Assembly (NCBI GenBank): GCA_038087875.1 | Contig: JAXLNO010000342.1 | Span: 62,001 to 126,000, forward strand | Origin: Malacoraja senta | Lineage: Eukaryota | DNA: 64,000 nucleotides | Direction: 5' to 3' | In this document: positions 8,953 to 20,734 of the stretch, piece by piece | Layout of the letters: the number at the start of each line of letters is the position of its first letter | Numbering within the stretch: the first letter of the stretch is position 1 | Translations under genes and position numbers: made by a program | Notes under the pieces: model-generated | Database searches by the model: none | Seen by the model: the letters and a program-made list of their open reading frames with translations, nothing else | Told to the model about the DNA's origin: nothing

Positions 8953-9760
8953 TCACAGTGGGAGCAGCTGCTCGCCGGCGTGGGTCCGCCAGTGCTGCCG
9001 CAACCCCCGCGAGCTGTCAAACTCCTCACCGCAGTATGGGCAGTCGTTGGGCTGGCTACTGGTGTGCACGTGCTAGTGAGACAGGGTGTGGAAGGCCATG
9101 GCAAAGCGTTCCTCACACACCGGGCTGGGGACTGGACGGTCGCCGGTGTTCACCCGCTCGTGGGACAGCAGCTTGCAGGGGGTGGGTGAAGCCCTTGCCG
9201 CACTGGGCGCAGGTGTAGGGTCGCTCGCCGGTGTGCACCCGCTGGTGGGACAGCAGGTGACCGGACTGAGTGAAGCCCTTGCCGCACTGGGTGCAGGTGT
9301 AGGGTGGCTCGCCGGTGTCGGTGCGCTGGTGGGACAGCAGGTTGCCGGAGCGGGTGAAGCCCTTGCCGCAGTCGTTGCAGGTGTAGGGCCGCTGCCCGGT
9401 GTGCAGGCGCCTGTGCTGCTTCAGCTCTGGTAACGACTTGAAGTCTTTGCCGCAGTCGGAGCAGGTGAATGGCCGCTCACTGCCGTGCACCCGCCGGTGC
9501 TGCCGTAGCCCCGACAACCGGACAAAGCTCATGTCGCAGGTAGGGCAGCCATAGGGCTTCTCGCCCGTGTGCACCCGCCAGTGGGTCTTCAGCACAACCG
9601 CCGTCTTGAAGCTCTTGCCGCACTCCGAGCAGTCGAAGGGGCGTCCTCCAGTGTGAACCCGCCGGTGGATCTCCAGCTTGCTCGGGCACTGCCAGGCCTT
9701 GCCACACACGTCGCACTCATAACGCTTCTCCTTATTGTGCCCCATCATGGGGTCCTCCAT
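8953..9760 (-). pseudogene. C2H2 zinc-finger gene (large terminal exon), disrupted
   Basis: Five intact fingers with TGEKPY-type linkers, one His-to-Asp finger, then a +1 shift in the G-run at 9178-9182 and TAG at 9073-9075. The corrected frame ends AGEQLLPL* (TGA 8953-8955). Acceptor CCCCTCCTGCAG with exon start at about 9888. Confidence 0.75.
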
Positions 9761-10149
9761 TGAAGTGCAGCCCCTCGAAGCTCAGCCGCACACCGAGCAG
9801 ATTGGGGGGGGGGCTCACCGGCATCCTGGCCACCCTCAATGGCTGCTCACGTCCCCGTCTCTTCGTCCACAGCAACGGTTCCTAAACCCTGCAGGAGGGG
9901 AACACAGAGGGTCAACAAGCTGGCAAACAGGACATTATGTGCACATATTGGGTGCGTTTATGGTGGAGGAAACCGTTCAAATACGTTCAGGGCTGTAGAT
10001 TAATCGGCCTCCGCAAAATTGTTAAATTGTCCCTAATGTGCGTAGGATAGTGCTAGTGTACGGGGTGATCGCTGGTCGGCACGGACTCCGTGGGCCGAAA
10101 GACCTGTTTTCGCGCTGCATCTCTAAACTAAACTAAACCAAAGGGTCTC

Positions 10150-12904
10150 TGTAAAGGAGCTAAGTCTGACTCACTTGTAGCTTTACTTTACGTTTAATAA
10201 TAAGACAGGTTAAACACTTTCCAGCACTGACTGCACCCAGTCTATCATCATGCTGGAACCAAGGGAGGAGCACACGGGAGATAGAGTTCTTATACTTGAT
10301 AACTGAGGCGTGGTTAGTGGTACTGAGGTAGCTATATTATTGGTTGCATGCATAAACCATCTACATCCTTCCCCTTACAATCAAATACACATGGAGGCAA
10401 TTGGGATAGTGTCATTACAATAAACATGCGAGTTTAGACAAAGTCGCCGTAGCGGACAGGCGGCTTAACAATGCGACCCAAACGCATACGTACAGCACCT
10501 CCCACCCCCCCCCATCGGAAAGAAGAGAAGGCGTAGCGGAGGCAGGCAAGAATGTTAAGGAAGGGGGAGATGCAGTCGGAGCGGGAGAGACAGGAGGGGG
10601 AGGACGTGCAGGAGGTGAAACCGCCCGGCCAAAACCAGGAGGCAACGGAGAAGGAGACCGCAATAAGCGAGGGGACTGGGGCATGCATGGAGCAGCAGGG
10701 CGATCAGCAGCAGCAGGTAGGAACCGCAACGGAGGAGCATAACGAGCCGCAGGAAGAAGCTTCGGCTCGTTCACAGCCAACAGGTGTTGACGGCTCCGTC
10801 GATAGGCAGTCCCCTCGTAATCCACCAGGTATGATCTTGGAGAGTCGTCCACACCAATCACAGTCGCGAGGCGGGAATAGCCGGTGGTGGTCCGCATCCG
10901 AACGACCTGCCAGGGTAGTAGAGGCAGTAGAGGGCGGCAGGACCTGTCGTGGGACCGTCGTTGAACTTCATGTTTCTGATCGATCCGTTGTTGGACAGTG
11001 GCAGGATTGAGCACTTTCGGTAGCAGGGACTGCTGGACGATTGGCATAGGTGGTCTTGTAACCCTTGACATCAGACGCTGGGCAGGGGAACCCATAGCCG
11101 GGTCCCGTGAGACGTTACGTAGGTTTAGTAAGCCCAGGTAGAAATCGCAGTTAGACAGGCGGGACTGCTCCATCAGGCCCTTAGCACTCCGCACGGCCCG
11201 TTCGGCCAGGCCGTTACTCTGAGGGTACTCAGGGCTGCTGGTGTAGTGATGGAAGTTCCACCTCGCAGCGAAAGCTTTGAATTCGGCACTTGTGAATTGC
11301 CGTCCATTGTCGGTCTGCAAACGGACAGGGACACCGTGGGCGGCGAAATGCTCCCGCATTTTGGCGATGACCATCCCGGAGGTGACGGACGGAAGGAGGT
11401 CCACCTCGAACCAGTTGGAGTATGAGTCCACCAGGATGAGAAACTGCTTCCCCCGCCATTCGAATATGTCGGCAGCCAGCGATGTCCAGGGCATGGCCGG
11501 CGCCGGCTGCTGCAAAAGAGGCTGCCGCTGCTGGTGTGGGGTAAGGTTGTTGCAGGAGGCACAAGAGGACACACGGTTCCTGATGTATTTGGCCATGCTA
11601 GGCCAGTAGAATTGTCCCTGGGCATGAGAAACAGTGGCCTCGACCCCAGGATGACCGTTGTGGGCTGCGTTGTAGTATAGATCATACAGAGAGGCTGGGA
11701 CCACGACCTTGTGGCCTTTGACGATAACCCCATCCTGGATCACCAGCTCATCGCGGACAAGGAAGAACGGTTGGGCACCCGATGGCAAATTGGTGCGTCT
11801 GTCGGGCCACCCACGCTTGATGATGGCTGCCAGCTGCTGCAAAGCAGGGTCAGCGGCGGTGTGCTCGACCAGGCACTGCAGCTGGCAGCCATCATCAAGC
11901 ATGGGTGGCCCGACAGACGGCAACCCGTCCTCCGGGGCGTAGCCTGCCCGCAGCGCGGGTCTAGAGTTGTCTATTTTAGGACGCGGTCTGTTGAGACCAG
12001 TTAACTTGACCGATCGACCAACAGCGTCCCTTTGTCCGAACAACGGGTCAACGACTTCAGCCAACCTGCATGCATGCATTGCGTCGGTCAGAGTAAGATC
12101 CGGCCTTCTCAATAGCTCCGATCGCAATTTCTGATCCAGCATACCTGTCACTAGAATGTCCCTGGTAAGCTGGTCAGTCATGTTTTCAAATCGACACCTC
12201 TGGGCGAGATAGCGCAGATCCGCAATAATGCATTCAACAGGTTCATCAGGCTGTTGCTTTCTCGTAAAAAACTTGGCTCGCTCTAAAATGCGGTTAGAGG
12301 GCAAGTCGCAAATTTCTGCAAACTTTCGCAATAGACATACCGGATCGTTGGCAGACTCCACAGGTACTTGAGCCCGATCGTTTTCATCCCGGACCGCGGG
12401 ATCATAGGCGAAGGCTCGTGCTCTCCTCATGGCATCGGGACTAGCAAGGTTCAGTAGGAGAGAAGCTTTAACAATGTCAGGATCGTTGCGATGAACGATA
12501 TTAATGTAATGTGTGAAGTCCATTTCAAAAGTCGCCCAGCGTTCAGCTATGTCAGCATCAAAGACTAGGGGCAAGGGTTTGCGGCACGAGGATGCCATGG
12601 CAAAAGGTACAAAACTCCGATAAAGCAACACTTTCAAAGAAATAAAAAAACGATAAACAGGAGGCGCGCGTTTTAACTTGCTGACACCATGTAAAGATGT
12701 TAAGTCTGACTCACTTGTAACTTTACTTAACGTTTAATGATAACACAGGTTAAACACTTTCCAGCACTGACTGCACCCAGTCTGTCATCATGCTTGAACC
12801 AGGGAGGAGCAAGAGGGACAGAGAGTTCTTATACTTGATAACTAAGGCGTGGTTAGTAGTACTGAGGTAGCTATATTATTGGTTGCATGCATAAACCATC
12901 TACA
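10150..12904 (-). mobile_element. Gypsy LTR element 1 (Mag-like), gag fused to integrase; protease, RT and RNase H absent
   Basis: LTRs at 10150-10365 and 12690-12904 with TG...CA ends and about 17 differences in 216 nt. Short PBS TGGTGTCAGC; PPT AAGGGGAAGGA. Flanks GTCTC and GTTAC do not form a clean TSD. Confidence 0.9.
10415..12598 (-). CDS. Gag-integrase fusion ORF of Gypsy element 1
   Basis: Gag (FFTRKQQPDEPV...LAQRCRFEN...RDILVTG) joined to integrase HHCC (AHNGH...CASC) and DDE core (ADIF, TDNG, GLAE). The natural C-terminus GRIVKPPVRYGD lies in another frame (ORF 10434-10688). Confidence 0.8.
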   Translation of the reverse strand: MASSCRKPLPLVFDADIAERWATFEMDFTHYINIVHRNDPDIVKASLLLNLASPDAMRRARAFAYDPAVRDENDRAQVPVESANDPVCLLRKFAEICDLPSNRILERAKFFTRKQQPDEPVECIIADLRYLAQRCRFENMTDQLTRDILVTGMLDQKLRSELLRRPDLTLTDAMHACRLAEVVDPLFGQRDAVGRSVKLTGLNRPRPKIDNSRPALRAGYAPEDGLPSVGPPMLDDGCQLQCLVEHTAADPALQQLAAIIKRGWPDRRTNLPSGAQPFFLVRDELVIQDGVIVKGHKVVVPASLYDLYYNAAHNGHPGVEATVSHAQGQFYWPSMAKYIRNRVSSCASCNNLTPHQQRQPLLQQPAPAMPWTSLAADIFEWRGKQFLILVDSYSNWFEVDLLPSVTSGMVIAKMREHFAAHGVPVRLQTDNGRQFTSAEFKAFAARWNFHHYTSSPEYPQSNGLAERAVRSAKGLMEQSRLSNCDFYLGLLNLRNVSRDPAMGSPAQRLMSRVTRPPMPIVQQSLLPKVLNPATVQQRIDQKHEVQRRSHDRSCRPLLPLLPWQVVRMRTTTGYSRLATVIGVDDSPRSYLVDYEGTAYRRSRQHLLAVNEPKLLPAARYAPPLRFLPAAADRPAAPCMPQSPRLLRSPSPLPPGFGRAVSPPARPPPPVSPAPTASPPSLTFLPASATPSLLSDGGGWEVLYVCVWVALLSRLSATATLSKLACLL

Positions 12905-15407
12905 GTTACCAAATAGTGAAAGGCCTGGATAGAGTGGATGTTGAGAGGATGTTTCCACTAGAGGGAGCATCTCAGCAGAGGGCAAAGCCTCACAATTAAA
13001 GTACACTCCTTTAGAAAGGAGATGAGGAGGAATTTCTTTATTCAGAGGGTGGTGAATCTGTGGAATTCTGCCACTGAAGGCTGTGGAGGCTGTCAATGGA
13101 TATTTTTTTAAGGCAGAGAAAGATAGATTCTACAATAGTACGGGTGTCAGGGGTTATGGGGAGAAGGCAAGAAAATGGGGTTTGGAGGATAGGATAGATC
13201 AGCTATGATAGATGGGACGAATGGCCTAATTCTGTTCCTATCACTTATGATCTTATGAACTTATGATTGAGTAAATAGCTGTCTGTAGTATTAACAATGA
13301 CAAAACAAGTATATAGCATGCTAACGTCTTGGTAAAACTCATTCAAAATTATTTTATTAAATGCTCATAATTCAGAAATGACACTGGTGGATATACAATG
13401 ACATTCTCGGTCTGTTGCACATAAAACATTTCCACGGCTATTACACCACAGCTTTGATAATGAGTGTTGTTCCCAGTGCTCTGTAGGGTTAAGAAAACAC
13501 AGCCCCCATACGTTACCGTGTTCCATAAATATTCACAGGACATGGTACTGGGATGTTGTCTATGTGGAGTTTGCATGTTCCCCCTGTGAGCACGTGGGAT
13601 TTCTCCCGGTGCTTCGGTTTCCTCGCACATCTCAATGATGTGCAGGTTTGTAGCTGAGTTGGCCTTTGTAAAATTGCCCTAGTGTATCGAAAGAGGATGT
13701 GAAAGAGGGATAACATAGAACTGGTGTGCAAGATGGATGGTATCAACTCGATGAGCTGAAGGCTCTGCATCCATGCTCTATAACTCAACTAAACTAAGCA
13801 ATATTATGTAAGCTGTGGTGTAGAGCGTGGTTCGTATTGAAAACAAAGATCCTTGTTGACTGGCCCATCAAATACTTGAAGCACTGAGTGAAGCATTAAA
13901 TGCAAAGGCAATTACTTCTCCACTACACCATCAGGTATGTGAACACGGAATGCAGGTTACAGTATGTGACAAAGAGAAGTGGCAAAATAACTAGGAAGAA
14001 ACTGCAGATGCAGGTTTAAACCGAAGATAGGCTCAAAAAGCTGGAGTAACTCAGCGGGTCAAACAGCATTTCTGGAGTCTGAACAAGGGTCTCATCCCGA
14101 AATGTCACCTATGTCTTGTATCCAGAGATGCTGTCTGATCCGGTGAGTTTCTCCAGCTTTTTGTGTCTATCTCTGGCAAGATAAGTATATGATGTTTGAG
14201 AGTTAGATTGACAATCTGATCTGCAGGAAATAGAGGGATATGGATCATGTTGCAGTTGGATGGGATCAGTTTAGCATCTCATCATGTTCACCACAGTCAT
14301 TGTGGGCCAAAGGACCTCTTCCTGAGATGAACATTTTTATGTTTTATATAAAATAAGATTAGTAATCAGCTGTAAGCCCCCTTGAAAAGACTGCATCATT
14401 CAATAACATTATGTCCAATCTGATTTCGATCAGTTTACTGCATTATTCCTGCAATCTTTGATTCATTTCTGATCTAAAACTCTCTATATCTCAACCTGGA
14501 AAATATTCATTCACCTTGTCTTCACAGCTGGAATAGAAAGTTCAGGCAAATCATACACCTCCTGGAAAATAAATCTTCTTCGTAACTATTTTAAAGAGGG
14601 ACCCAACATGGAGGGGCTGCCAGAACAAAGAGGGACCATTGGGAACTGTAATGATTACTTTGTAACTGCGTCGACACCCTATATATGGTGACTCTTTGTA
14701 TGTCATGGAAAACAAAGAATTTCACTGTGACATGACACATATGGAAATAAAGTATCAATCAATCAAATAGGCGACCTTTTATTCCAAAATGTGGCGCAAT
14801 GTATGACTTTGGAATCACAGGGTAACTGCAGTGAAGACAGCACTTGAAAAATTAATGGCTGAATGTAAAGTCATCAGTCAGCATTGATACAATAAAGAGC
14901 ATAGAACATAGAACAGTACAGCACAATAACAGGCCCTTTGACCCACAATGTTTGTGCCGAACATGATGCCAAGACCAATTGTTATCTGCTTGCACATAAT
15001 CCATATCCATCCATACCCTGCATATACATGTGCCTATCTAAAAGTCTCTTAAATGCCACTATCATATCTGTTTCCACCACCACCCCCGGCAGCACATTCC
15101 AGTCACTCGCCACCCTTGGCGTAAAACACTTGTCCTGCACATCTTTTTTAAACTTTGCCACTCATTGTAAAGCTGTACCTGCTCTTATTTGATATTTCCT
15201 TCCTGGGTAAAAAGTCGGATGGTCTACCCTATCTCTACTCCTCCCAGTTTGATATATTACTGTCAGGTCTCCCCTCAATCCCCGACATTCCAGAGAAAAC
15301 AATCCAACTGTCCAGTCTGTCCAACTTTTCCCTGTGGCTAATACCCCACTAATCCAAGCATCATTCCGGTAGACCTCCTCTGCATCCCAAAGGAAGCTGA
15401 TTGTACT

Positions 15408-15580: not shown

Positions 15581-16384
15581 CTGTTGGCATATATAGTGCA
15601 TTTTAAACATTTATTGATCAATAACAACTTTGTAATGATTTTATTATCTAAATTAAACTAGCACTGTTCATATCTAATTGAAAAGTAATAAAGTTTTAGA
15701 TTTATGTATTTATACAGAGGATGGATGTGCTTAAAATGATCAATCAAAAATCATTAAGCTCATATTAGTATTATGGTATTGAGATTTTATCTGCAGCATT
15801 TAATTAAGAATTTAAAGAATCAAGTACGTCAGAAATAGATGACTATTTGCAGTGTAGAGGTCAACAAGGCCATTTTCTTATGTTGATGATTGTTATTATA
15901 GCAAATAAGTGAACCCATTTATAGTTGATAAAACTTCAAAGGTTTTAAACTTTGCTGATATTTCAATGATAACTGAGAATTTAATTTTCTCTCTCTCGCT
16001 CTCGCTCTCTTGCAACAGGTGTAGCTACTTCAGACTGAGAATGGGGTCGGATATGGCACCACTATTGGTCTTTTGTGTAACTAACTACTATCAGAAAATT
16101 AACTAGATGCCTGTAAAGAATTGATAACCAGGCATCGTTACTTTACTATCTTTATTCATACTGGATCATTATACATTGCACTAGCTGTACGTGGTCTGTC
16201 ACAGGAACTAGAGAGCGATCTGTGGGTGGGGAGGTTGTTGTTATACTTGTGATATGGGGAGTGGTTAGTAGGTGTGAGGTCACTATGTTAAAGGCACATG
16301 CACATCTCATCTACATCCTTCCTCTCCGAAACGACAGGCAAATACAATGGTGACATGGCGACCACGGCTCATGCGCTAGGATAG

Positions 16385-18196
16385 CTAGGCAACATCGCCA
16401 TAGCGGTCAGGCGCTTTGACAAGACGTCCCGCCCGGGTCCGCGTCTCGCCATCCACCCTTCCTGCAGGAGGAAGAGGCACCGGCGGGGAAGGACGAACCT
16501 GAAAGGGAGAAACGGGAGGAAACGGAAGAGACCGCGGCACCGAACCCGGAGGGGATGCGGGGCCGGGACCGGGAAGAGCGCGGGCGGGCGAGCGAGGACT
16601 AGTCGGAGTGTGATGGAGCGGAAGGGGCGAAGGAGGAGCAGAGCGAGGCATGTCAGGAATCACGGGCAGGGCAATGGCCGGACGCGAAACAGGCAGCGGG
16701 GGAGCAAAGGGATCGGCGGCAGGAGGACGCGGCTCGTTGACGAGCCGAAGGTGCTGGCGGGACCGTCGGTAAATGGCCCCAGCGTAGTCGACGAAATAGG
16801 ACCTGGGCGACCCCGCAGAGCCGACGACAGTAGCGAGCTTGGAGTGACCGGGAGTGGTCTGCATACGGACTACTTGACCGGGGAAGAGGGGCGGCAGCGG
16901 GTGGCAGGACCTGTCATGGGAATGCTTTTGGACGTCGTGCCTGAAGGCAATTCGTTTCTGAACCGCCGCAGGTGGGAGGACCGAGGGTATGAGGGAGCGC
17001 TGGGCCACAGGGAGCGGGAGCCTGGTAGCGCGAGACAGGAGCCGCTGAGCAGGTGAACCCATGGCAGAGTCGCGGGAAATGTTCCGAAGGCTGAGGAGGG
17101 CCAGGTGGAAGTCGGAGTTAATGCCACCACACTGTTCCAACAAGTGCTTAGCACTGCGGACCGCGCGCTCGGCCAAACCGTTGCTTTGCGGGTACTCCGG
17201 GCTGCTGGTGAAATGGCGAAAGTTCCATCTGGAAGCGAACGCTTTAAACTCGGAGCTCGTGAACTGGCTGCCATTGTCCGACTGCAAGCTTGCCGGGGGT
17301 CCAAAAGTGCTAAAGTGAGGGTACAACCTGTCGATGACGGCCGAAGAGGTCACGGAAGGCAGCCGGTCAACCACAAACCAGCTGGAGTAGGAGTCAACGA
17401 GTACCAGGAAATGTTTGCCCCGCCACTCGAAAATGTCTGTGGCGAGCGCCATCCAGGGCAGTCCGGGCGCGGGCTGCTGTAGAAGCGGCTGACGCTGCTG
17501 ATGGGGGGCGCGGCTGTTGCAGGTGGAACACGAGGAGACCCTCTCCCGGATGTACTTGGCCATATCCGGCCAATAGAACTGGCTCTTGGCGAGAGACACA
17601 GTGGCTTCGGCCCCAGTGTGACCGCGGTGTGCGACTTGAAAATATTGGTCGTGCAGCGCCGCGGGCACGACCACTTTGTGACCCTTCACCACCACGCCGT
17701 TGTGCAGTACGAGCTCGTCCCGAATCAGGAAGTAGGGCACGGCTCCAGCCGGCAGTGCCGAGCGACGGTCAGGCCAGCCCTGCCGGATGACGGCAGACAG
17801 CTGTTGCAGGGCAGGGTCGTTGGTAGTGTGTTCAACCAGGGACTTCATCTGTGGCGAGGGGACGAAGTTCAATCGTAGTACTAGTAACTCAGACATTTCG
17901 TATTGGTGGTGAGCAGTGGACGTCAGCGGGGCGCGAGACAACGTGTCGGCTACGAACATGTCCTTGCCCTTACGATAAACCACCGTGAACGTGAAACGCT
18001 GGAGCTGCAGCAGCATGCGCTGCAGACGTGATGAGGCCACATGGATCGGTTTGTTGAGCATGGTAACAAGTGGTTGATGGTCAGTTTCAACGGTGAAAGT
18101 GTTGCCCACGATGTAGTCCCGGAATTTGGAGCAGGCAAACACCACGGCCAGTAGCTCCTTCTCAATCTGCGCGTAGTGCTGTTCGGTGGCGGTCAT
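16385..18196 (-). CDS. RNase H (partial) + complete integrase ORF of Gypsy element 2
   Basis: YAQIEKELLAV, VETDHQPL, AHRGH...CSTC, TDIF/SDNG/GLAE, C-terminal TRAGRLVKAPDRY. The frame is open upstream to the tRNA junction (AWLWLPNHQKAF...CDASQFGLGA). Confidence 0.9.
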   Translation of the reverse strand: MTATEQHYAQIEKELLAVVFACSKFRDYIVGNTFTVETDHQPLVTMLNKPIHVASSRLQRMLLQLQRFTFTVVYRKGKDMFVADTLSRAPLTSTAHHQYEMSELLVLRLNFVPSPQMKSLVEHTTNDPALQQLSAVIRQGWPDRRSALPAGAVPYFLIRDELVLHNGVVVKGHKVVVPAALHDQYFQVAHRGHTGAEATVSLAKSQFYWPDMAKYIRERVSSCSTCNSRAPHQQRQPLLQQPAPGLPWMALATDIFEWRGKHFLVLVDSYSSWFVVDRLPSVTSSAVIDRLYPHFSTFGPPASLQSDNGSQFTSSEFKAFASRWNFRHFTSSPEYPQSNGLAERAVRSAKHLLEQCGGINSDFHLALLSLRNISRDSAMGSPAQRLLSRATRLPLPVAQRSLIPSVLPPAAVQKRIAFRHDVQKHSHDRSCHPLPPLFPGQVVRMQTTPGHSKLATVVGSAGSPRSYFVDYAGAIYRRSRQHLRLVNEPRPPAADPFAPPLPVSRPAIALPVIPDMPRSAPPSPLPLHHTPTSPRSPARALPGPGPASPPGSVPRSLPFPPVSPFQVRPSPPVPLPPAGRVDGETRTRAGRLVKAPDRYGDVA

Positions 18197-18390
18197 GGTG
18201 CGGGACGCGAAGGAGACAGGCAGCTGCAGGCCGTCATGGACCTGGAGGCAGGCGGCACCGAGTCCGAATTGAGAGGCGTCGCAGGTGAGGACAATGGGAC
18301 GCTGCAGGTCAAAGAACTTGAGCGTGGGTGTGCTGATCAGTTTAGACTTAAGAATGTCAAATGCCTTCTGATGATTGGGTAACCAAAGCC

Positions 18391-18422
18391 AGGCGTGGGT
18401 TCGAATCCCACTTCTGACACCA
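18391..18422 (+). other. 32-nt copy of the 3' end of mature tRNA-Leu(CAA) including CCA (extended PBS)
   Basis: AGGCGTGGGTTCGAATCCCACTTCTGACACCA abuts the LTR TG. From memory it matches the vertebrate tRNA-Leu-CAA 3' end (T-loop GTTCGAATC). Confidence 0.85.
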
Positions 18423-20734
18423 TGTAAAGAATTGATAACCAGGCATCGTTACTTTACTATCTTTATTCATACTGGATCATTATACATTGCACTAGCTGTA
18501 CGTGGTCTGTCACAGGAACTAGAGAACGATCTGTGGGTGGGGAGGTTGTAGTTATACTTGTGATATGGGGAGTGGTTAGTAGGTATGAGGTCACTATGTT
18601 AAAGGCACATGCACATCTCATCTACAATGCCCAAGGAAGAAGATAAGAGACCTTGTCCAGGATCAGCCTATCTTGCTTCCATTGTTCCTACATTTGGATG
18701 AGTGAGTTAAGGGTGACATAAGAATAATTTTGACCATAAGATATTGGAGCAGAATTATGCCTTTCAAGTCCATTGAGTCTACTCCACCATTCAGTCATGG
18801 CAGATCGATTTTTACTGCTAACTCCCATTCTCCTTCCTTCTCCCTGTAACCTTTGTGACCCGTACTAATCAAGAACCTATCAATCTCTGCTTGAAAAATA
18901 TGCAATGACGACGCACACAGCTGTTTGTATCAATGAATTCCACAGATTCACCACCCTGTGACTAAAGAAATTCCTCATCTCCATATTGAAGGTAGGTATT
19001 TTTATTGTGAGGCTGTGCTAGACTCTCCCATTACTGAAAACTTCCATTCCACATCAACTAACCAGGCATTTCATTATCTGGTAGGCAGGGCCGGATTTAC
19101 ATATAAGCTGGACAAGCTTCAGCTTAGGGCCTGGAGATCTAGGAGGGCCTCGCAGAGCCGAATTTACCACTAGGCTTCATAGGCTGAAGCCTGGGGCCCT
19201 GAAATGTAGGGGGCCTCCGGCCAAGGCAGGACACCTGCCGTTCAACTCTGGGCGGGGCGGCCCCCCTCTCTATCTCTATTTCTATCTCTCTCTCTCTCTG
19301 TCTGTCACTCTCCGTCTCCGGGTCTCCGTTCTCCGCTCGCTCCTCATCCGCCGGCACAGCCGGCCGCCTTGCACATGCGCACTGCTACGGCCAGCACGTC
19401 CTCCCCTGCACATGCGCACAACCACGGCCCGCACATCATCGGCCGCCCTGCGCATGCGCACTGCCACGGCAACTGGTCGGCGCTGGGCACTTTCTCCCTC
19501 GCTTTGAATCGGGAGATTTGGCCGCCATTGCTGCCTCGCCGCAACCGCTGAAAACTAACGCAGAATCACTCCCTGACCCTGGATCAGGAGTAACTCCCTG
19601 GAGTAACTCTCGCTTCTGTTTTCCTGATCCTCCATAAATATTCTAAAAGGAATTTAAACTGGAGGTGGTACAGGGCTGAACAATAACAGCCTATTGCATT
19701 TTATCTGTTTATTTATTGTGTATATATATGGTCTATGGTATATAAACAGACTGAACTTTTATCTCCTGTTCTGTATTATGTTCACATATTCTGTTGTGCT
19801 GCAGCAAGCAAGAATTTCATTGTCCTATCTGGGACACATGACAATAAAACTCTCTTGATTCTTGACTTGGACTTAAGCAAAAAAGGGTTCTTGGGGGAGA
19901 AAGAGGTACCTTAAATTTACTTGCGTCTGGTTGGGTAATTATGGTAGGGTGAAGAATATTCCATGCTTTAATTGTGCGGGGGAACTCCATGGAGCAGCCA
20001 GCAACTCAGGATAGAAGAAATTGGGTGACGTTTCGGGTAGATACCCTTCTTTAGACTCCCTCTGGTTTTAGTGTCTTTAGTTTAATTTAAAGATACAGCG
20101 TGGAAACAGGCCCTTCAGGCCACCGAGTCCACGCCGACCATTGATCACCCGTACACTAGTTCTTTCCCACACATTAGCGAAGTAAGTCAAGAGTCAAGAG
20201 TGTTTTATTCTCTCACGTCCCAGTTAGAACAATGAAATCCTTACTTGCAGCGGCACAACAGAATATGTAACCGTAGTACTCTGTAAACAATGTTATAAAC
20301 GAGAAAACAAAACGGTGTATATTTATATATGAATATATAACTATATAAATATATATGTGTGTGTGTGTATAATATATATACCCACACACACACACACACA
20401 CAATTTCCCTCCTGGGATTAATAAAGTTCTATTGTATAGTATCGTGTGTGTAGGAAGGAACTGCAGATGCTGGTTTAAACTGAAGATAGACACAAAAAGC
20501 AGGACAATATTAGGAAAATATTACGTTTTGGGTTGAGTCTGAAATAGGTTCCTGCACACCTTTGGAATGTGGAAGGAAACAAGAGCACCCGAAGAAAACC
20601 CATGCGATCAAAGGGAAAAGGAGCAAACTCCATACTGACAACACCCATATTCAGGATCAATTCCGGGTCTCTGGAACTTTTAGGCAGCAACTTTATGGCC
20701 AATGTACAGCCTCATAGTCTTGAACTTAATTAAA

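Follow-up and report, generated by a model that had tools for sequence, protein, structure and literature searches.

The locus described here raises the question of how a sequence complementary to a transfer RNA came to be fused, on one side, to the 5' long terminal repeat (LTR) of a retrotransposon and, on the other, to the middle of its pol gene. The element lies in a 64-kb stretch of DNA, analysed as a whole and referred to as the window. It is a Ty3/Gypsy element on the minus strand, at 18626-16112, and is 2515 bp long. Based on the evidence collected below, we consider it probable that the internal deletion of this Ty3/Gypsy copy arose from deferred and misplaced plus-strand (second) strand transfer. 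The parts of the element are given in the following lines, index i of the tRNA copy being window position 18423-i.

18627..18631: upstream copy of the target-site duplication, GGCAT on the minus and ATGCC on the plus strand
18423..18626, minus strand: 5' LTR, 204 bp, TGTAGA...TTTACA, identical to the 3' LTR at 201/204 positions
18394..18422, minus strand: tRNA-only stretch of 29 nt, complement of tRNA-Leu(CAA) positions 76 to 48
18404, minus strand: base opposite tRNA A58, a T without substitution, index 19 of the tRNA copy
18391..18393, minus strand: CCT microhomology, common to the tRNA copy (indices 30-32) and pol, with the junction somewhere inside
16385..18393, minus strand: pol remnant, a single open frame with its stop codon at 16385-16387
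16316..16327, minus strand: polypurine tract GGAGAGGAAGGA, adjoining the 3' LTR, from the sequence
16112..16315, minus strand: 3' LTR, 204 bp, from LTR comparison
16107..16111: downstream copy of the target-site duplication, from the sequence and empty-site contigs

Assignment to Ty3/Gypsy is based on the LTRs with their target-site duplication, the primer binding site (PBS) together with the polypurine tract (PPT), and a Gypsy-type order of pol domains. The LTRs have TG...CA ends, the target duplication is 5 bp long, and the PBS, TGGTGTCA..., begins immediately after the 5' LTR. An earlier note on this DNA had described near-identical LTRs (3/204 mismatches) and an ATGCC duplication, and sequence comparison bears out both, with three mismatches between the 5' and the 3' copy. 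The outer borders are confirmed to the base by contigs of two public runs (X21 and X22), in which an empty site joins 16106 to 18627 with five letters matching either side. Because two LTRs, duplication and PPT are complete, the tRNA stretch is understood to lie inside one integrated molecule. The sequences on both sides (18627-18900 and 15900-16111) place the element as nested in another repeat, and contig depth climbs to tens of thousands from 18728 onward. Given this depth and the presence of empty-site contigs in two runs, the host sequence around the element is multi-copy; with the flank itself repeated, the empty-site contigs may represent paralogous sites rather than an allele.

Downstream of the tRNA stretch runs an open frame of 668 codons. 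In this frame Pfam identifies, in order, RT_RNaseH_2 (from profile position 1), RT_RNaseH, Integrase_H2C2 and rve, and the integrase core is followed by a proline-rich tail. No gag, protease or RVT_1 domain was detected by Pfam in the 668 codons, and the leader and the core of the reverse transcriptase (RT) are also absent from the 2515-bp element. That gag, protease and RT core are missing, as had been noted earlier, is thus in accordance with the restriction of Pfam domains to those from RNase H to integrase. The remnant aligns collinearly, from about residue 547, with a 1157-aa Gypsy polyprotein relative, and it is 50% identical to Gypsy polyproteins having RVT_1 upstream. An exact look-up of the 603-aa ORF product gave no match on record; the nearest proteins are those of a Logan contig (76% identical) and of little skate (65%).

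The 32 nt of tRNA-Leu(CAA) reported directly after the 5' LTR are exactly there: scripted comparison of 18422-18391 with the reverse complement of the last 32 nt of tRNA-Leu-CAA-2-1, CCA included, gave a match at 32/32 positions. Since ARAGORN gave no tRNA gene within the 64-kb window, the reference was human tRNA-Leu-CAA-2-1 as given in PMC10359600; tRNA-Leu-CAG shows one difference within the 32 matched positions. The 29 nt that are tRNA-only span the CCA, the discriminator, the 3' strand of the acceptor, the entire T arm and C48, and indices 30-32 correspond to three further bases of the variable region, past position 48. The copy runs in register with the PBS, starting from the CCA complement, and is antisense as a plus-strand copy predicts. 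Complementarity to the primer tRNA extends past the native PBS and past position 58. By chance, 0.11 occurrences of the T-arm 17-mer would be expected in the window, which contains one. Judged from the bases alone, the T opposite A58 would fit an unmethylated A58 and an error-free bypass equally well, and the hypomodified tRNA-Leu of the earlier note may be only one of two explanations. Rfam returned a T-arm-like fragment and nothing further useful, and a scan of viral contigs for the 3' part of the tRNA gave no match. The bin 18324-18424 has contig depths of 13,579 (run X23) and 3,184 (run X24) compared to single digits in neighbouring bins, from which it follows that tRNA-Leu 3'-like sequence is abundant in these two samples, with tRNA genes or a tRNA-derived repeat as its source; one contig links the tRNA-Leu-3'-like sequence of this bin to a T-run.

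Only the first ∼8 nt of the tRNA stretch (18422-18415) constitute the native PBS. A 560-nt contig carrying the LTR of the same family (3 differences in 125 nt) has TGGTGTCA after the LTR, hence 8 nt of tRNA complement, and continues with an unrelated leader (AATAACTTACC..., in longer form AATAACTTACCTTGCGCCTCC...); only 30 loose letters in a single contig represent this canonical same-family 5' end, and the run they come from carries an organism code other than that of the best-matching runs. In six further 5' ends of the clade, of which one lies in the window at 12689 and five were reached via gag/pol relatives (little skate, other contigs), the tRNA complement stops after 8-12 nt and gives way to an unrelated leader. 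In the Gypsy copy at 12904-10150 (minus strand), TGGTGTCAG is followed by leader and gag. Two circumstances that the earlier note had named as fatal to its own reading therefore do not apply: intact members do not natively carry the same 32-nt PBS, given 8 nt in the same-family contig and 8-12 nt in the relatives, and the extra nucleotides do not match the element's own leader, the canonical leader being unrelated to the tRNA. The count of 14 nt beyond an 18-nt PBS, also from the earlier note, stands as regards read-through past A58 and fails as regards the split into 18 + 14, an arithmetic borrowed from retroviruses, for the native PBS of the family has ∼8 nt.

Most canonical leaders of the clade share a box, CG(C/T)CTCC(T/C)GTTTA(T/C)CG, located ∼15-20 nt past the short PBS and seen at window positions 12651-12664, at 9933-9946 of the skate locus L002, at 7940-7955 of L003, and in L005. 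Its first 7 nt (CGCCUCC or CGUCUCC) could, by sequence, pair with GGAGGCG of the tRNA (the variable-arm/48/49 segment), the variant doing so via a G-U pair. Two proposals, namely that the canonical leaders derive from tRNA copies by decay or that they provide a second primer contact, were dismissed after alignment against shuffled sequences, the similarity not being significant (p 0.02-0.7).

The position of the deletion breakpoint is provided by the intact pol of the family. Up to 18393, the window agrees with contigs of the family's intact pol; upstream of this point, these contigs diverge into ...AAAAAGGACACTT. Loose ends at 18393 that lead into intact pol are found in X21 (3 contigs), X23 and X24, and the X23 contig, 770 nt in length, has 0 differences across 18075-18393. 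Across the breakpoint, intact pol encodes LRDLIKKDTS on the upstream side, directly followed by WLWLPNHQKAF; a relative of 72% identity (L001) has the same upstream pol as the intact-family contigs. Given the divergence at 18393, the overlap between tRNA and pol amounts to CCT (3 nt), leaving 29 nt that are tRNA-only, and the GCCT microhomology proposed earlier has to be shortened by one letter. The tRNA insert ends exactly at the internal deletion junction, and the pol downstream is collinear and on the same strand through to the PPT. One contig variant has ACGTCCT at the breakpoint, which gives an additional imperfect match with a one-base bulge. An overlap of 3 nt is barely above chance, so that landing on microhomology serves as a description but has little force as a mechanism; a blunt template switch would leave the same appearance as a CCT landing. 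Support from reads for the join as such is thin. The 66-nt junction query was represented by only 3 sampled words, one of which was present in X21 and none in X22, too sparse a sample for a verdict on read support. The contig comparison used assembled contigs, not raw reads, and cannot count copies of the junction.

The core of the earlier reading, that is, read-through of tRNA-Leu(CAA) beyond A58, transfer into pol and integration of the deleted derivative, is supported by the in-register tRNA copy, by the 8-12 nt of the relatives and by the breakpoint as fixed from intact pol. Starting from what is directly observed (the structure of the copy, the identity and register of its tRNA stretch, the short native PBS of the relatives, and the position of the breakpoint with its 3-nt overlap), we infer the order of events in a deferred plus-strand transfer as follows. 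Plus-strand strong-stop DNA, primed at the PPT, would copy the LTR and go on into the tRNA-Leu(CAA) primer, not yet removed from the minus strand. With no stop inside the short native PBS, nor before A58, copying would traverse the T loop and then the T stem, ending at position 48 or at most 3 nt beyond. The 3' end of the strong-stop DNA would then have lost its match to the PBS region on the minus strand and might pair, via CCT, at a site in pol where the RNase H-like domain starts. Extension from there would yield a molecule composed of LTR, tRNA copy, half of pol and LTR, with leader, gag, protease and RT core lost, and this deleted double-stranded product would have integrated with a 5-bp duplication.

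Comparable signatures are found elsewhere. A scan of public metagenome contigs gave 42 loci (L006-L047) at which TGG is combined with 25 nt of complement to tRNA-Leu(CAA). About 31 of the 42, from other eukaryotes, show an LTR-type ...CA end and then a tRNA-Leu(CAA) copy of 30-57 nt; the division into these ∼31 LTR-adjacent copies and ∼8-10 real tRNA genes was made by flanks alone. ARAGORN called a tRNA-Leu in 0/42 of the loci, introns being the probable cause. One LTR family has copies of 35, 37, 40, 47 and 57 nt with differing junctions, and a second LTR family has copies of 42-57 nt. A two-LTR Gypsy element (L037) carries a 57-nt copy that extends through the anticodon, lacks the tRNA intron and is fused to a gag zinc knuckle. 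An apparently intact Copia element (L030) is complementary to tRNA-Leu(CAA) over at least 34 nt. At several loci the LTR with its tRNA tail is followed by unrelated DNA, with no second LTR or pol nearby. With the signature this widespread, the rarity of the 2515-bp copy is lowered.

Several other histories of the locus deserve consideration. The read-through might have been the same, only older: a deleted master with the 32-nt tRNA stretch could have been copied in trans by autonomous relatives, and the present locus would be its progeny. We regard this as a possible, if less than probable, course of events. The element has retained the requirements in cis (LTRs, a now very long PBS, PPT), and the family is highly repeated, with thousands of contigs in the organism J runs. 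However, no second copy of the junction was seen, the search by 3 sampled junction words having given almost nothing, and the leader that was deleted usually holds packaging signals. A different proposal concerns the read-through itself. Extended copying of tRNA-Leu, over ∼34 nt and with landing on the leader box CG(C/T)CTCC, could be the normal route of the clade, in which case the element would embody a mis-landing and not a failure of the m1A58 stop. Placement of the box ∼15-20 nt past the PBS in most canonical leaders, where it could pair with GGAGGCG of the tRNA, would agree with this, as would the ≥34 nt (at least 34 nt) of the same tRNA complement in the apparently intact Copia element L030. 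Nonetheless, the similarity between leader and tRNA beyond the PBS is not significant for the individual sequences (p 0.02-0.7 against shuffles), a 7-nt match is within the reach of chance, and canonical copies keep a non-tRNA spacer, part of which regular read-through should overwrite in the progeny. We therefore consider this proposal unlikely.

Explanations that dispense with misplaced strand transfer meet with greater difficulty. DNA rearrangement after integration would involve a deletion from PBS to mid-pol, with a tRNA-Leu gene or a derived repeat as the source of a patch or conversion, and the abundance of tRNA-Leu-like sequence in the X23/X24 samples (depths of 13,579 and 3,184) could have supplied a donor. 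Two precise junctions would be needed, however, one of them lined up exactly with the 8-nt PBS and taking in the CCA complement. CCA is not encoded in nuclear tRNA genes. The tRNA stretch shows no SINE body, tail or additional duplication, LTRs and target-site duplication are undisturbed, and tRNA copies of variable length recur from the LTR/PBS border in other genomes, as seen in the metagenome loci; the rearrangement is thus very unlikely. That the long complement represents the native PBS of the family, with the deletion unrelated to it, finds a parallel in apparently intact elements elsewhere that have long complements (L030), but it is contradicted by the same-family contig and the six clade relatives with only 8-12 nt and would demand a deletion that happened to break where the tRNA match ends, which makes it highly improbable. 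An assembly artefact, in the form of a chimera between an LTR/PBS read and a pol read, might be suspected from the highly repetitive family and the thin junction-specific read support. Yet 21 extra nucleotides of perfect, in-register tRNA complement cannot come from an assembler, and the matched LTRs, the PPT and the duplication, together with an empty-site joint that fits the outer borders to the base, render the artefact scarcely credible.

Misplaced plus-strand transfer, the reading preferred here, has precedents in retroviruses. Pulsinelli and Temin (J Virol 1991) reportedly observed, in single-cycle replication of a spleen necrosis virus vector, deletions from misplaced strand transfer at sites of little or no homology. 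The Gypsy copy may resemble these deletions in misplaced transfer at little homology, although they were obtained with an experimental retroviral vector. The closer analogy is with HIV-1. Nine studies provide 44 proviral sequences in which a tRNA-Lys3 insert of 7-54 nt marks the deletion junction (PMC12657518, Commun Biol 2025), and the authors explain these inserts through read-through of the m1A58 stop (PMC12657518; background in PMC13191261). HIV-1 proviruses and the Gypsy copy have in common an intact 5' LTR and PBS, tRNA complement past the normal stop, a tRNA insert exactly at the internal deletion junction, and collinear sequence downstream. They differ in that the HIV-1 case involves a somatic lentiviral provirus with an 18-nt PBS and tRNA-Lys3, whereas the Gypsy case involves the germline of a fish-type genome, a PBS of ∼8 nt and tRNA-Leu(CAA). 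The insert beyond the PBS is variable in HIV-1 (7-54 nt) and amounts to 21 nt beyond the native ∼8-nt PBS in the Gypsy copy. Substitution at position 58 was present in 5/44 of the HIV-1 sequences (PMC12657518) and is absent from the Gypsy copy. Because the same class of product has been described for HIV-1 (PMC12657518), no new mechanism is claimed. The 2515-bp copy is a germline Gypsy example of a reverse-transcription error known from HIV-1. Literature searches found no description of such junctions in endogenous LTR retrotransposons, which is not proof of their absence.

Among LTR retrotransposons, Ty1 and Ty3 have extended or bipartite primer binding, with second contacts to tRNA-iMet that were mapped experimentally (reviewed in PMC5371799). 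The canonical clade relatives share with Ty1/Ty3 a short PBS (8-10 nt) adjoining the LTR (PMC5371799), but their second tRNA contact would consist of a 7-nt box match of weak statistical weight, compared to the experimentally mapped contacts of Ty1/Ty3; in the 2515-bp element, unlike the canonical relatives, the leader box is deleted. Like LARD and TRIM elements, the 2515-bp element has LTRs, PBS and PPT and is missing the proteins for self-replication. LARD and TRIM elements are without recognisable coding sequence, whereas the element studied here keeps its open frame of 668 codons from RNase H to integrase, and its origin therefore remains visible.

The importance of the finding lies in suggesting that an error recently catalogued in HIV-1 reservoirs also gives rise, in a vertebrate Ty3/Gypsy family, to non-autonomous derivatives that are heritable. 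Fossils of this kind record the stop points of plus-strand synthesis on the native primer tRNA in the germline, where direct measurement is hard. A single copy adds little in this regard, and the value lies in a wider census of the type that the metagenome loci hint at. Tallies of tRNA-copy length per family and primer could reveal whether the A58 stop is leaky for tRNA-Leu(CAA), and the same tallies could show whether short-PBS elements pay for their design with frequent deletions. So widespread a signature also makes one ask about tRNA-Leu(CAA) in its role as primer. It is conceivable, if doubtful at present, that LTR elements primed by tRNA-Leu(CAA) are systematically prone to, or even reliant on, plus-strand synthesis far past A58. 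If so, strong-stop DNA with ∼30-35 nt of tRNA copy would be a regular intermediate and deletion copies its frequent by-products, tRNA-Leu(CAA) would be without an effective m1A58 stop for these RTs, and genomes would offer a readable census of how far the RT travels on the native tRNA in the germline.

Other elements of the clade display irregular structures of their own. The Gypsy copy at 10150-12904 (minus strand; 2755 bp) has 216-bp LTRs that are 92% alike and a canonical 9-nt PBS. Its gag is joined straight to pre-integrase pol, with protease, RT and RNase H missing, and the join lies within a near-palindrome of ∼124 nt at 11796-11919 (90/124 self-complementary). A related element of 3.2 kb (L002) is located at 9704-12942 in Leucoraja erinacea (CM054011.1). 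Between its gag and mid-pol, the first ∼105-111 nt of the element's LTR occur twice, in tandem and inverted (10843-11057), and one of these copies shows 100% complementarity to the beginning of the 3' LTR plus 4 nt of the PPT. This looks like another accident of reverse transcription, by self-priming or strand switch. In L001, a Logan contig of SRR24105896, the start of the element's own LTR (21-22 nt identical, at 50-75) is fused directly to the RT thumb region of pol, which adds a third type to the unusual LTR-pol junctions of the clade.
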